NCBI GenBank assembly: GCA_002269645.1
Contig: NIVC01000694.1
Coordinates: 378,464 to 442,463 of the forward strand
DNA: 64,000 bases
Direction of reading: 5' to 3'
Source of the DNA: Macrostomum lignano
Taxonomy: Eukaryota
This document shows, one piece after another, positions 8,859 to 52,973 of this stretch (the first letter of the stretch is position 1; each line of letters starts with the position of its first letter). A model generated the notes under the pieces. It saw nothing but the letters and a program-made list of their open reading frames with translations. It was not told where the DNA came from and did no database searches. The translations under genes were made by a program, and so were the position numbers.

Positions 8859-10147
8859 TCATCTGAAGCTATACAGCACTGACTGCAGCGCTTGAATGTC
8901 CTCCTCCAGCCTTACGATTATGTATTTCACCTTGTCGAGAATGTACTTTATTTCGTGTGCCATAGCAGACAACTTTCTGCACCGATCTCGTATGTCGGCG
9001 ACCCTCCGAAGTTTTGCATTAGCGTCCCTGATCGCTGTCGCCATGGATAAACTTGCAGTTGCATGGAGGGTTGCGAGCCCGACACCTCCAGCAAGCCAGG
9101 CTGACAGCTCCAGGCCGACAGATACTAAAATAACTGGATGAGCCAGTCAGGCATATATACGAGCGTACTTAGTGAAACTGCTTTCTACTTTCAGTTCAGT
9201 AGCAAAGAAGAATACATAAGCAATTTTATAAAATAAAGGCAACAGCTGAAATTACTTTGATAAGTTCAGAAGCCCAAGCTTGCAGGCGTAAACAACTTGC
9301 TATGAATGGTTGGTTCAGCAATCATGTACATTAGCCAGTCTACTAAAATGTACACGGCAGCCTTAGGCTGGAATTCCGATAAAGGCAATCAAATTTGGTT
9401 GGGCGGGGGAGTGTGGAAAGGCGCGGTTGGAGGGTTTAATTAAGCTGGAGGGTAAGAGCCAATAAATGAGCCTTGACTTTTAAAAATACATTTAAAAGCT
9501 TCTGTTAAACTTACTACTGAACTGAAAGTAGCGTACATTTACTGAGTGGCCCATCTACGTTCTAGTATCTTTATCCGTGCCTTGTGTCCTTGTTCCGCGC
9601 TCTGGCCGCTTCAACTTCTCCGCCTTCTGTGTGAGCTTCTCGTGGAGCATTTTTAAGACCCGATGAGACTTAGCTCGTATTCAGTCCATCAGTGAATCTA
9701 TTGAGTCGCTTGCAGCACTCCCTGAGACTTTCTATTGTATGCTGCATTATTTGACGGAATTCTTCTGTTGCTTCATGAACATGCTCTTGCGCAGCTTGCT
9801 TTTTGCTAGACTATTGTATGGCAAAAAATTGCTAGTCTTTAGCAATTCCAGTAGTGGCTTGCAGCTTTTATTATTTTGTTGTCAAAAGCGCTTCATTATT
9901 ATTGCCTTGATTCAAAATTACAGTCATTTGAAAACATACACATGTACTCTTGATAGTATGCTTGTGCATAGTATGCATGAGGGATTCGGGTTATTACGAG
10001 CTGTAGTATGGGTGCACGGATTTTTGCCCCTTGTTGCTGCATATTTGCAATGCAGACTACATAATTGCTGACCATGACAGGTAGATAAACTTTAAAGCCA
10101 AGGTGGGCTTGTTCGTATCGTAATGCAGAATATGCAAGCTCAGCCAT
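8859..10147 (-). pseudogene. Damaged member of the coiled-coil/hydrophobic-hairpin gene family, interrupted by a MITE-like insertion
   Basis: Starts MAELAY like 52973; 9570-9800 and 8859-9120 align to 39052-39570 (LTQKAE..RTRTQG, MATAIRDANA..RLEEDIQALQSVLYSFR); it has stops and a ~450-bp insertion in the hairpin-coding region. Confidence 0.8.
9121..9569. mobile_element. MITE-like insertion with imperfect TIRs
   Basis: Ends gatacta...tagtatc; internal ctactttcagttcagtag (~9186) is mirrored by ctactgaactgaaagtag (~9513); absent from the paralog at ~39345; no clear TSD. Confidence 0.6.
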
Positions 10148-10831
10148 GGGTCTCTACCAGTTGCTTGGCGAAAGCACAGACAAGCATAGGAATAAATATT
10201 TCAACCCGTTGAGTGAGTTGAGTGAGGCTTGAACACAATGGAGTTCGCGTACTAAATATTTATTCGCATGGTTGGCCAGTCATTCAAGCCTTGAATTGTC
10301 TCGAGGCTAGGCGCAGCGTCTGAGCAGCAGAGATATTTAGAGACAAAGAAGAAAGTTACAAAAAGTTGAGCAGCAGTAAGTGTGCTCAGGGTGTACTTAA
10401 TCAAAACTGAACTTCCATTTTGCTTCGGCTGGGCCGTTGAATACAGGCTTTCACGTACAGAGTTGCAAGCTACTCCGATGCACACGGTCTCGAACTTCTC
10501 CCTGTCTAAGCGCTCAGTGCACAATAAGTTTATTTATTCGTCTGAGATTAAAAAGACAGAGGGTGAGCAATGCGCCTTGTCTCACTTCCATTGGTCGGAT
10601 CCGGGGCTTTTGCACAGGAGCTCCGCGCCTGCCTGGCAAAATGGAGCTTGGGGAGCTTATGGGTTCGCTGCGTGCGGCTTCTGGGGGCAGGGCCATAGGT
10701 AAAGTTTGTTTTATTTTTTTTTATTTTATTGCCAATGCATTTCGACCCTTATAGGTCATCTTCAGGGTGGTAATGAAAATTAATCAAAGCAGTTAAACAA
10801 ATACTTATCAAAATTCAACGGGAGCACCCCA

Positions 10832-11110
10832 ACTGCCAGCCGGAAAACTGCCAGCCGACAATTGCCAGCCGACAACTGCCAGCCGACAACTGCCAGTCGA
10901 CAACTGCCAACCGACAACTGCCAGTCGACAACTGCCAGCCGACAACTGCCAGCCGACAATTGCCAGCCGAGAAAACTGCCAGCCGGAAAACTGCCAGCCG
11001 ACAACTGCCAGCCGAGAAAACTGCCAGCCGGAAAACTGCCAGCCGACAACTGCCAGCCGAGAAAACTGCCAGCCGAGAAAACTGCCAGCCGACAACTGCC
11101 AGCCGACAAG
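10832..11110. repeat. 14-15-bp tandem array (actgccagccgaca / actgccagccggaaa)
   Basis: About 20 directly visible units. Confidence 0.95.
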
Positions 11111-11625
11111 TTCTAGCAAATTGAGTCTACTGTAGCCTACTTATTAGCTAAGTATGAGTAAAAAGCACGAAACTGTTTGGCTAGCAAAAGGCTTGTGGGT
11201 AGCCTTAAATGTCGCCCTTCCCTTCCCTAAAATTTTCAGATTTCCATTAGAAGTATATATGTGAAGGAGAAGGCATTCTGTAATGCCTATTGTAAATATT
11301 TCTGTATTGAAAGTTCATTTACTTTATTATTTAATTTGCGATTGCGATTTCTATATGACGCAATCCTAGATAAGTCTATTAAATTACTTTACTTAAATAA
11401 AGCTTTCAAAGAAAGAGTAAAGGCTACCTAAAATACGAAATTTGAATGCCTTCTCCTTCACATATATACTTCTAATGGAAATCTGAAAATTTTAGGGAAG
11501 GGAAGGGCGACATTTAAGGCTACCCACAAGCCTTTTGCTAGCCAAACAGTTTCGTGCTTTTTACTCATACTTAGCTAATAAGTAGGCTACAGTAGATTCA
11601 ATTAGCTAGAACTTGTCGGCTGGCA
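11097..11625. mobile_element. Foldback/MITE-like element with 182-bp inverted arms
   Basis: 11097-11278 is the reverse complement of 11444-11625 (two mismatches seen), with a ~165-bp AT-rich spacer; absent from copy B. Confidence 0.8.
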
Positions 11626-51112: not shown

Positions 51113-51580
51113 TAGTAGTAGTAGTAGTAGTAGTAGTAGTAGTAGTAGTAGTAGTAGTAGTAATAGTAGTAGTAGAGTAGCAGTAATAGTAGTAGTAGTA
51201 GTAGTAGTAGTAGTAGTAGTAGTAGTAGTAGTAGTAGTAGTAGTAGTAGTAGTAGTAGTAGTAGTAGTAGTAGTAGTAGTAGTAGTAGTAGTAGTAGTAG
51301 TAGTAGTAGTAGTAGTAGTAGTAGTAGTAGTAGTAGTAGTAGTAGTAGTAGTAGTAGTAGTAGTAGTAGTAGTAGTAGTAGTAGTAGTAGTAGTAGTAGT
51401 AGTAGTAGTAGTAGTAGTAGTAGTAGTAGTAGTAGTAGTAGTAGTAGTAGTAGTAGTAGTAGTAGTAGTAGTAGTAGTAGTAGTAGTAGTAGTAGTAGTA
51501 GTAGTAGTAGTAGTAGTAGTAGTAGTAGTAGTAGTAGTAGTAGTAGTAGTAGTAGTAGTAGTAGTAGTAGTAGTAGTAGT
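51113..51580. repeat. (TAG)n microsatellite, ~155 units
   Basis: Direct. Confidence 0.98.
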
Positions 51581-52013
51581 ACTCTCCGGGGCAACCCGAG
51601 ACCGAAATCGAAGCAAGATCAGACATTGGTATTTCACTTTCTGTGTCGTTAAAATGTTGGTGTCCAAATCTTGGCACGGACATGTGATTTTTAAACAATC
51701 ATTTTCGAATTAAACTTCGTATAATACACCTTCAAAAGTACCACTCATATTTGAAATACTATTTAATTGTACTCAGTATAGCTGTAAAGCATGGTAATAA
51801 AAGCAGTATACTAACATACTCACATAAGCTGCAATACCAGCTCAATGATTGAAGTACCACTTCGAGAAAAATTACATTTGTTTTGTCTGGTGTAAATAGT
51901 AAATCGAAAATAAAACTACTCTGAGTTCTGCCTGCTTTTGCCTAAATGAAACCAAAGAAACATTACAATGAATTTTAAGTTAGTTATTTAATGAAAAGAT
52001 AAGAAAATTTTAT

Positions 52014-52973
52014 CTATTTAATGCCGTGCATCCTCATCTTGGCCTCCAACTCAGCAATCCTTGCATCCATTGCATCGCGCTGCTCCTGCTGCCGCCGAGC
52101 GATGCGGCCGTCCTGGTCCAGAAGTAGAAATCCAGCTCCACTTGCTTCACCACCGCTTTCATCCGGGCTTTCATCCCTGCTGAGCAGCTCCAACAGTGTC
52201 TGCAGCGCCTCGATGTCCTCGTCTAGTCGGATGCGTCCGGCCTTGTCGAGAATGCTCTCAATATTCCTTGCTATAACAGCTAGTTTCATTGAGCAATTTC
52301 GCATGTTCTCAACCTGCCGTTGTTTTGTTTTTGCGTTAGCGACAGTGGTTGCAGCAACGGCACCGGCAGCGACACTAGAGGTGGCTCCAGCGGTAGCGGC
52401 GGCAGCTGCGGCTGCAGCGGCCACCAGGGCAGCTCCTCCAGTAAATAAACTGACGGCCGCGAGCCCGGCTCCTCCAACAGCCAGACCGGCTGCTCCTGCC
52501 GCCCCTCGGATTCTCGTCTGGTGCTTTTGCCGCTTGAGCTCCTCCGCCTTCTGTGTGAGCCTCTCACAGAGCTTCTTTGCGAGCCGATGCGAGTCATTCA
52601 GTCCGTCGTTGAATCTTCCAAGAGCTTCACGCGAGTCTCTGAGACTCCGAATTGATTGCTGCACCTTTTCACAAAACTCTCTCTTTGCTTCACGAGTAAA
52701 CTCGCTAGAGACGGGAAACAGTCGTTGAAAATGGTTGAACAATTCTTTTACTTCCGAGTACCGACACCACGACATGAGCTCGTATCCAATATCGCATACG
52801 CTCTGCAGTGCCCGTCTCAGTTTCTCTGACTTCGGCTCATCAGTCAGTCTTATTTCTTCCATTTGTGTGGCCAGGTGATTCGTCTCCTCGATAAGACAGT
52901 GCAGCTCATAACTGCATCCATTAGATGTTGACGTCCTGAAAATTCGCGATGCAAAATATGCAAGCTCAGCCAT
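52014..52973 (-). CDS. 319-aa diverged member of the same coiled-coil/hydrophobic-hairpin family
   Basis: Shared motifs REF, LT.KA.EL, G.AGLA.G..GL.A...FTGG.A..AA, IEALQT.LE, D.RIA.QQ and K-M-R-x-(H/Y)-G-I-K; longer Ala-rich hairpin. Confidence 0.85.
   Translation of the reverse strand: MAELAYFASRIFRTSTSNGCSYELHCLIEETNHLATQMEEIRLTDEPKSEKLRRALQSVCDIGYELMSWCRYSEVKELFNHFQRLFPVSSEFTREAKREFCEKVQQSIRSLRDSREALGRFNDGLNDSHRLAKKLCERLTQKAEELKRQKHQTRIRGAAGAAGLAVGGAGLAAVSLFTGGAALVAAAAAAAAATAGATSSVAAGAVAATTVANAKTKQRQVENMRNCSMKLAVIARNIESILDKAGRIRLDEDIEALQTLLELLSRDESPDESGGEASGAGFLLLDQDGRIARRQQEQRDAMDARIAELEAKMRMHGIK

Follow-up and report, generated by a model that had tools for sequence, protein, structure and literature searches.

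An intronless gene cluster in Macrostomum lignano encodes predicted all-helical proteins with a Gly/Ala-rich hydrophobic hairpin and an architecture resembling that of alpha-pore-forming proteins

The analyzed window is a stretch of 64,000 nt from the flatworm Macrostomum lignano (contig NIVC01000694.1, positions 378,464 to 442,463 of the forward strand), and the coordinates of all its features are given relative to this window. It contains six loci of a family of intronless genes, whose products are helical proteins with a long hydrophobic hairpin in the central part of the chain. A preceding sequence-only reading of this DNA had listed six related loci on the same strand, and comparisons within the window by tblastn and blastn confirm that the six loci are mutually related and that all of them are on the minus strand. 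The matches between paralogues have E values from 1e-23 to 1e-160; the relatedness of the six loci is far beyond chance, and members of the family are present in another genome as well.

Three of the six loci are intact, one (type C) is nearly intact, and two are dead. The type A gene (49589-50506) is an intact intronless open reading frame (ORF) of 305 aa, with the hairpin encoded at 49877-50002 (amino acids 169-210, TAGLAIGGIGLAALGFFTGGLAWIAAGAAAGTACGVGAGVVA). The type A' gene (11666-12730), also an intact intronless ORF, encodes 354 aa with the hairpin at 12017-12142; it is a recent paralogue of type A, with 84% identity over the aligned columns. The third intact intronless ORF is the type B gene (52014-52973, 319 aa), whose Ala-rich hairpin of 58 aa is encoded at 52332-52505. 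Type B is about 38-40% identical to type A, and type C is 41-43% identical to type B. Hence the statement that at least three diverged types coexist in one cluster holds.

The type C gene (39052-39842, hairpin 39222-39365) has a frame broken by a 1-bp deletion. Its ORF starts at 39842 and matches the family to residue about 224, where the frame changes; the missing base falls in an AAA run near 39165-39170, and the homologous C-terminus resumes in the next frame, continuing to 39052. Since the break sits in a homopolymer, both a true frameshift and an assembly error are possible. Type C also lacks the C-terminal '...AELEAKMRxHGIK' tail found in types A and B.

The locus 8859-10147 is a chimeric pseudogene in decay: it contains stop codons and a frameshift, and within its type-C-like pieces the hairpin region is invaded by about 400 bp of foreign sequence. 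Its 3' two-thirds are 79-89% identical to the type C locus at the nucleotide level, its 5' end resembles the fragment at 48047-48399, and in its 5' part (9945-10300) the family coding sequence is limited to about 9 codons. The better reading of this locus is that a deletion has fused a fragment-like 5' end to a type-C-like 3' part.

The sixth locus (about 48047-48399) is a solo 5' remnant, consisting of an upstream region, an MAEL... start and the non-family sequence also seen in the 5' part of the pseudogene. At the nucleotide level it is 76-81% identical to 9945-10700 and, from 48212 on, also to the start and upstream region of type B (52943-53570), and tblastn finds no family coding sequence in it. 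The idea that type C and this remnant are halves of one gene split by the long terminal repeat (LTR) retrotransposon described below was dropped, as type C has an aligned N-terminus and a start codon of its own, and as the fragment is separated from the LTR element by 3.4 kb of other sequence. Thus the original count of six loci stands, while three of them are not what they were listed as: 39052-39842 is frameshifted, 8859-10147 is a pseudogene, and the locus given as 48045-48242 is a 5' remnant.

The structure of the type A protein was predicted with AlphaFold2 in two runs, using alignments of 6 sequences (predicted local distance difference test, pLDDT, 68) and of 31 sequences (pLDDT 75.6, predicted template modelling score, pTM, 0.65). 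The model is all-helical, with helices at residues 2-47 (kinked), 55-95, 102-171, 206-251 and 255-301. The confidence is low at residues 168-210, corresponding to the hairpin, which lies between the two longest of these five long helical segments. In every member this low-confidence segment coincides with the longest stretch devoid of charged residues, which measures 42 aa (A and A'), 48 aa (C) or 58 aa (B).

The hairpin consists of Gly, Ala, Ser and Thr by 64-79%, and its mean Kyte-Doolittle hydropathy is 1.3-1.55 (in type A, 67% and 1.55 over 42 uncharged amino acids), with a near-invariant (F/L)TGG turn in the middle. The A/A' hairpin contains five GxxxG motifs, and none are found elsewhere in the protein; the hairpin of B has one such motif, and that of C has none. 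Outside the hairpin, about 30% of residues are charged. No signal-like hydrophobic stretch was found at the N-terminus of the family members checked.

Most of the earlier description of the proteins is therefore retained. Their all-helical nature is seen in the AlphaFold2 models, the lack of an obvious signal peptide is borne out by the hydropathy of the N-terminus, and the Gly/Ala-rich hydrophobic segment between coiled coils is present, its length, given as about 40 aa, being 42-58 aa when measured. The genes are intronless, as had been stated: the ORFs run without interruption, and the homologous genes of M. lignano, three of which form a tandem within 9 kb, have one exon each, next to neighbours with several exons.

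Type A' differs from type A by two 28-aa insertions flanking the hairpin. The insertion before the hairpin (12158-12262, minus strand) adds a 28-aa heptad repeat to the helix; its exact placement is ambiguous in the repetitive sequence, and it is tied to a tandem 21/63-nt repeat at 12175-12295. The insertion after the hairpin (11924-12007, minus strand) adds matching 28 aa to the helix. As the two insertions are of equal length, an antiparallel two-helix stalk carrying the hairpin would stay in register. The pair looks like a compensatory lengthening of such a stalk.

The history of the cluster can be followed from the self-comparison of the window (self-megablast). The segment 32736-39245 pairs with 2272-9053 at 85-97% identity, this segmental duplication taking in the 3' half of the type-C copies together with about 6.5 kb of DNA on their downstream side. 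The 5' half of type A and about 0.85 kb upstream of it are duplicated as well, 50033-51371 pairing with 12257-13574 at 90%; the upstream flank of type A (50507-51371, minus strand) is about 90% identical to the A' flank (12731-13574). As A and A' share this flank, the duplication occurred at the DNA level and took in the presumed promoter region. The upstream flank of type B (52974-53513, minus strand) is shared at about 80% with 10148-10699 and 48243-48800, forming an upstream block of 0.55-0.75 kb common to type B, the pseudogene and the solo remnant.

Two modes of origin had been suggested for these intronless genes, retroposition and horizontal transfer, together with birth-and-death evolution. 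Retroposition is not borne out, as the similarity between copies extends 0.5-0.85 kb upstream and up to 6.5 kb downstream of the genes, and no poly(A) tract is present 3' of them (in the 300 bp that follow, A-runs do not exceed a length of 5). The cluster has grown by segmental duplication and unequal recombination, in the birth-and-death mode that had been proposed: some copies are intact while others are frameshifted, chimeric or truncated, whole segments have been duplicated, and a young LTR element lies next to one of the copies.

The comparison of A and A' yields a synonymous divergence (dS) of 0.18 and a nonsynonymous divergence (dN) of 0.079, that is, dN/dS of 0.44. For A and B dN/dS is 0.41, and in the comparison with the M. 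lignano homologues it is 0.28. This range for the intact copies, 0.28-0.44, indicates purifying but relaxed selection.

A word-indexed search for relatives of type A retrieved only two M. lignano 'hypothetical proteins', P0001 with 57% identity over 99% of the type A length, and P0002 with 51% identity; repeating it with a broad alignment yielded almost no new matches. At E <= 1e-3, an exhaustive search with profiles yielded 44 proteins, the eight best (E from 1e-30 to 1e-137) all being from M. lignano; the window proteins themselves are absent from the collection searched. Those of the 44 matches that have a Pfam assignment carry ApoL (10), SseC (3, with overlap) or HlyE (2). The similarity to the Macrostomum 'hypothetical protein' family (BOX15_Mlig027034g1 and relatives) is full-length and colinear: the helical domain at the N-terminus, the hairpin with its FTGG turn and the '...AELxxKMRxxG' tail at the C-terminus are all included. 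P0003, a gene model of M. lignano, is chimeric, with an embedded copy 87% identical to type A fused to retroelement domains. No counterparts of types B and C above about 35% identity are present among the retrieved M. lignano proteins.

In two M. lignano members, P0007 (L002, 2448-3401) and P0008, the hydrophobic segment is shortened or degenerate, with 23-24 uncharged residues; these proteins may be either decaying or a variant with a less hydrophobic 'head'.

The next profile matches (P0009, P0011-14, P0016, P0018, P0025 and P0026) are full-length look-alikes of about 270-330 aa with no Pfam domain. Full-length hhalign comparison of the family with this distant eukaryotic set gives a score of 129.5, against 61.7 for the reversed control. 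When the hairpin is deleted, the N-terminal domains still score 53.0 (probability 94.6%, 145 columns; reversed control 18.6), while the C-terminal part alone gives no significant hhalign match to the set. On this sequence evidence, these proteins are genuine distant homologues. One distant homologue is on a sponge metagenome contig beside a metazoan-type class C G-protein-coupled receptor, and another comes from Coelosphaera sponge samples. Two are on long eukaryote-like contigs beside diverged tandem paralogues, of which L010 has two and L011 four, these tandem sets of very diverged intronless genes occupying L010 7533-10914 and L011 6914-15951. The central segments of the L011 paralogues differ widely, one extreme being a full Gly/Ala hairpin and the other a segment with hardly any hydrophobic character, recalling the differing heads of tripartite toxin components.

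Some distant relatives have CaaX-like ends. The C-terminus of P0009 (L005, 40-1011) is CSVL, and CAIL is found at the corresponding position inside the 1171-aa chimeric protein P0010, which suggests prenylation and a location on the cytosolic face of a membrane in this branch.

The cluster family is thus a real, uncharacterised and unnamed animal (flatworm) family. This agrees with its description as an undescribed animal family, its nearest relatives being unnamed M. lignano 'hypothetical proteins', and literature searches for the M. lignano locus tags or for a structural link between ApoL and ClyA found nothing. A horizontal origin by recent transfer from bacteria is not supported. The closest relatives are flatworm proteins, followed by proteins from eukaryotic contigs, which are also intronless, and the only identified bacterial profile match is a translocon protein of the type III secretion system (T3SS), matching via the hairpin. 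A scan of 185,579 bacterial and archaeal genomes, which detects close relatives only, revealed none. As the nearest non-flatworm relatives lack introns too, the intronless state is old in the family, and neither recent retroposition nor recent transfer can be deduced from it.

The proteins probably insert into membranes; they are analogous to alpha-pore-formers, of which they are not demonstrated members. The best explanation of the observed features, as a claim about mechanism only, is a switchable Gly/Ala hairpin on a two-helix stalk, which inserts into membranes or perforates them; we give it about an even chance of being correct. According to this explanation, the protein would be a cytosolic product of about 300-350 aa, lacking a signal peptide and folded at first into a soluble helical bundle. 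The hydrophobic segment would form a helical hairpin at the tip of an antiparallel two-helix stalk, with the remainder of the protein forming a soluble bundle able to shield it. Some cue would then release the hairpin, and the protein would pass from the soluble to a membrane-inserted, probably oligomeric, state. Small-residue faces (glycine zippers in A/A') may let the hairpins of several subunits pack tightly, disturbing or perforating the membrane, in a manner similar to that of ClyA-family toxins, T3SS translocators and ApoL proteins. The diverged paralogues encoded side by side may target different membranes or co-assemble. In favour of this explanation are the conservation of the family under purifying selection, the predicted architecture, the properties of the hairpin, the paired insertions of type A', the profile, NCBIfam and Foldseek matches to hairpin-inserting families described here, and the tandem sets of diverged paralogues in the distant homologues. 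A multi-component lytic or immune effector function, as proposed in the earlier reading, would be a candidate role; a role at intracellular membranes would also suit proteins that have no signal peptide and, in some distant homologues, CaaX-like ends.

Several observations weigh against this explanation. In the models, the pLDDT of the hairpin is below 50. The curated cut-offs are not reached by any Pfam or NCBIfam model, and the Foldseek searches with the models never yield E <= 1e-3, designed helical bundles scoring equally. In the hhalign comparisons, ApoL, HlyE and SseC resemble the family in the hairpin alone, and reversed-sequence controls score 54-62 from the layout alone, because the coiled-coil/hairpin/coiled-coil arrangement is palindromic and reads alike in both directions. 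Finally, the lack of a signal peptide, together with the CSVL and CAIL ends of two distant homologues, is equally compatible with a permanent intracellular anchor.

Such an anchor is the basis of the best-surviving alternative, according to which the products are constitutive hairpin-anchored coiled-coil membrane proteins (scaffolds of an organelle or the plasma membrane, tethers, or monotopic proteins of the lipid-droplet or endoplasmic-reticulum type) and no membrane is permeabilised. Apart from the missing signal peptide and the CaaX-like ends of P0009 and P0010, it is consistent with the high proportion of charged residues (about 30%), with coiled-coil-like helices having many matches to structural coiled coils, and with the selection, which is purifying and not positive. 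Still, rapid divergence, lineage-specific expansion, diverged tandem paralogues and frequent pseudogenisation are unusual for housekeeping scaffolds. Moreover, the glycine-zipper-rich hairpins and the order and lengths of the helical segments, which we take to resemble those of the ClyA structure, favour a switchable inserting module. On balance, we consider a permanent anchor possible, though rather unlikely.

The likeness to the ClyA superfamily (ClyA, Hbl/Nhe, AhlABC/SmhABC, MakABE and XaxAB/YaxAB) concerns several features at once. Proteins of both groups are all-helical and have about 300-360 aa; the cluster proteins would likewise fold into a long bundle with a hydrophobic head hairpin at about 55-70% of the chain, which in the superfamily is placed between the third and fourth long helices. 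As in multi-component toxins of the superfamily, diverged paralogues are encoded side by side. The hairpin of Hbl-L1 is the closest PDB sequence match. On the other hand, the hairpin in the cluster proteins is a long Gly/Ala segment (GxxxG-rich in A/A') and not a short beta-tongue, and the genes described here are eukaryotic, intronless and devoid of a secretion signal.

These features raise the question of whether the cluster proteins belong, as very divergent but true members, to the ClyA/Hbl/Nhe/Xax/Mak group, either ancient in animals or acquired by an old horizontal transfer, and forming a two- or three-component pore. In the Foldseek searches with both models, ClyA, AhlC, AhlB, SmhB, MakB and YaxAB recur as non-designed matches at or near the top, ClyA (1qoy) being ranked first for the better model, with colinear and nearly full-length alignments. 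Their scores are weak (E 0.018-0.3, template modelling score, TM, 0.3-0.41). Structure prediction and Foldseek thus place the ClyA family at or near the top, but with E of about 0.02, TM of 0.3-0.4 and equally good designed bundles they do not demonstrate kinship.

The sequence comparisons give a similar picture. In the window proteins, the Pfam scan at E <= 1 finds no match to HlyE (PF06109) or Bacillus_HBL (PF05791), and the NCBIfam scan at E <= 0.1 finds no match to MakA, MakB or XaxA. The sub-threshold matches of the window proteins in these scans (DUF4337, SesA, holin-X, SLATT and tropomyosin) are noise, and no family was assigned from them. It is only the distant homologues that show sub-threshold NCBIfam matches to MakA (1.4e-4, 21 bits against a cut-off of 320 bits), XaxA (3.4e-4) and also MakB, and two of the 44 profile matches are the HlyE-domain proteins mentioned above. 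In searches of PDB sequences, the top match of the broadened profiles is Hbl-L1 (7nmq), which was not counted as evidence of homology, designed coiled coils having nearly the same score; searches with a single protein or with the Macrostomum-only profile find nothing relevant and no ClyA-family chain. With the hairpin masked, the hhalign scores against the HlyE-domain protein P0021, the single HlyE representative, are 14.3 for the N-domain (reversed 12.4) and 19.7 for the C-domain (reversed 18.7).

Clustered HlyE-like genes in an animal have a precedent in Drosophila ananassae, where the hemolysin E-like genes hl1-38 are expanded and partly clustered, some of them being disrupted by transposons or frameshifts (PMC11731912). 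Both systems are expanded, clustered families of helical proteins of ClyA-like build, with damaged copies, in an animal genome. However, a recognisable HlyE domain, introns, secretion, induction by parasitoid infection and an argued bacterial origin are features of the fly proteins (PMC11731912) that are not shown for the cluster described here.

Thus membership in the ClyA group is favoured by the recurrent Foldseek matches, the Hbl-L1, HlyE, MakA, XaxA and MakB hits, the adjacent diverged paralogues, the differing hydrophobicity of the L011 heads and the fly precedent. It is opposed by scores that are all below significance, the failure of the Macrostomum-only profile, the lack of similarity outside the hairpin and of bacterial relatives, and the lack of a signal peptide, unlike in the secreted Drosophila proteins. 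We regard such membership as improbable. Similarly doubtful is the wider proposal that the flatworm genes and their sponge-type relatives form an ancient, hitherto unrecognised metazoan branch with the ClyA-like fold, in which tandem paralogues would co-assemble into multi-component pores serving immunity, prey killing or regulated cell death; if true, animals would possess an endogenous equivalent of the tripartite toxins of bacteria.

Apolipoprotein L (ApoL) proteins are helical, have a Gly/Ala-rich hydrophobic helical hairpin, and constitute the commonest Pfam family among the marginal profile matches, ten of the 44 carrying the ApoL domain (PF05461, best Pfam E 6.8e-15). Most ApoL members have no signal peptide and act on intracellular membranes. 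If the cluster proteins were highly divergent ApoL members, this would account for the unmasked hhalign score of 88.6 between the family and the ApoL-domain set (53.9 reversed) and for the (F/C)TGG-like turn in some ApoL matches.

However, PF05461 has no match at E <= 1 in the window proteins and none at E <= 1e-3 in the M. lignano members (0 of the 10 Macrostomum-family members of set A2). The matches span only the helix-hairpin-helix part of the profile, and the comparison is biased, as the ApoL set was chosen by the query profile. When the hairpin is masked, the scores fall to 18.1 for the N-terminal part (17.1 reversed) and 16.4 for the C-terminal part (10.9 reversed); since the masked signal is at background, the unmasked 88.6 arises from the hairpin and its immediate flanks. 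Moreover, the ApoL matches lack the N-terminal domain that flatworm and sponge-type proteins have in common. The ApoL link, with its ten domain matches and the score of 88.6, is therefore removed by the reversed controls (54-62) and hairpin masking, and we find an ApoL affiliation very improbable.

The same caution applies to SseC/SctE of the type III translocon, a coiled-coil protein whose central hydrophobic hairpin inserts into the target membrane. Three of the 44 profile matches carry SseC, partly overlapping the ApoL set, and the hhalign score of the family (MAC) against SseC, 62, is at the level of the layout background of 54-62. SseC/SctE proteins are bacterial and secreted by the injectisome, and the hairpin is the only part they have in common with the cluster proteins.

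It is in architecture, above all in the composition of the hairpin, that the cluster proteins resemble ClyA-type and ApoL-type proteins, and common descent is not demonstrated. Accordingly, of the claimed ClyA/ApoL-like layout, the likeness itself stands, whereas homology is not shown: no cut-off is reached, the Foldseek E values exceed 1e-3, and the similarity is gone when the hairpin is masked.

That the genes are non-functional, transposon-borne ORFs or retrocopies persisting in a repeat-rich region can hardly be maintained: the cluster is indeed situated amid LINE, Gypsy, Maverick-type and DDE elements, half of its loci are damaged, and P0003 fuses a copy to retroelement domains, but dN/dS is well below 1 between the intact copies and across species-level divergence, homologues occur in non-transposon contexts in M. 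lignano and in sponge-associated contigs, no viral or transposon fold is matched, and the copies share upstream flanks and have no poly(A) tails. In particular, the possibility of a viral or transposable-element protein was rejected, as no fold match was found in BFVD.

The window as a whole is eukaryotic and repeat-rich, and the neighbours of the cluster genes are mostly transposable elements. A Ty3/Gypsy LTR retrotransposon (40301-44686, minus strand) lies about 280 bp upstream of the long ORF containing type C. Its 198-nt LTRs (40301-40498 and 44489-44686) are 100% identical, and its gag-pol ORF (40572-44471) is uninterrupted, encoding 1299 aa with the RVT_1, RT_RNaseH, rve and Integrase_H2C2 domains. 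It is probably a very recent insertion and looks complete. The ORF2 of a non-LTR retrotransposon (16965-20981) is also uninterrupted, encoding 1338 aa with endonuclease, reverse transcriptase and RNase H; a second RNase H-bearing fragment is found near this element on the opposite strand (stretches noted along with the element: 20947-21771 and 24916-25743).

The 186-aa ORF at 21714-22274, which adjoins the LINE element and weakly matches PC4 (transcriptional coactivator p15), may be a part of the LINE ORF1 or a captured fragment. Three consecutive ORFs on the plus strand (27285-29850), the last of them matching DNA polymerase B (PF03175) of the organellar/viral type, look like a broken Maverick/Polinton-type B-family polymerase gene. 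An intact ORF of 258 aa at 62394-63170 encodes an ISXO2-like (IS1595-type) DDE transposase, here in an animal genome.

Two kinds of repeats are adjacent to or included in the duplicated segments. A very long and pure trinucleotide microsatellite at about 51090-51600, reading as poly-Tyr, poly-Thr, poly-Leu or poly-Val depending on the frame, is located about 0.6 kb upstream of type A, at the edge of the block duplicated with the A' upstream region. The tandem-repeat ORFs 2224-5004 and 32519-35150, composed of 'AENRAAL...' and 'PLTSPSA...' units, are inside a 6.8-kb segmental duplication.

For the practice of homology searches, the family is a cautionary example, as a Gly/Ala hairpin combined with coiled coils gives seemingly convincing but composition-driven matches to ApoL, HlyE, SseC and Hbl. 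The cluster itself is a clear case of birth-and-death evolution via segmental duplication in a transposon-rich region. Few alpha-helical pore-forming or membrane-inserting effector families are known in animals, namely ApoL, the Bcl-2-type proteins and the horizontally acquired HlyE-like genes of some flies. If the membrane activity is confirmed, the proteins described here would add one more animal effector family, shared by flatworms and sponge-type genomes and characterised by the lack of a Pfam domain, a ClyA-like layout and a recurring organisation in tandems of diverged intronless paralogues, and Macrostomum lignano, which supports RNA interference and transgenesis, would offer a tractable system for testing it.

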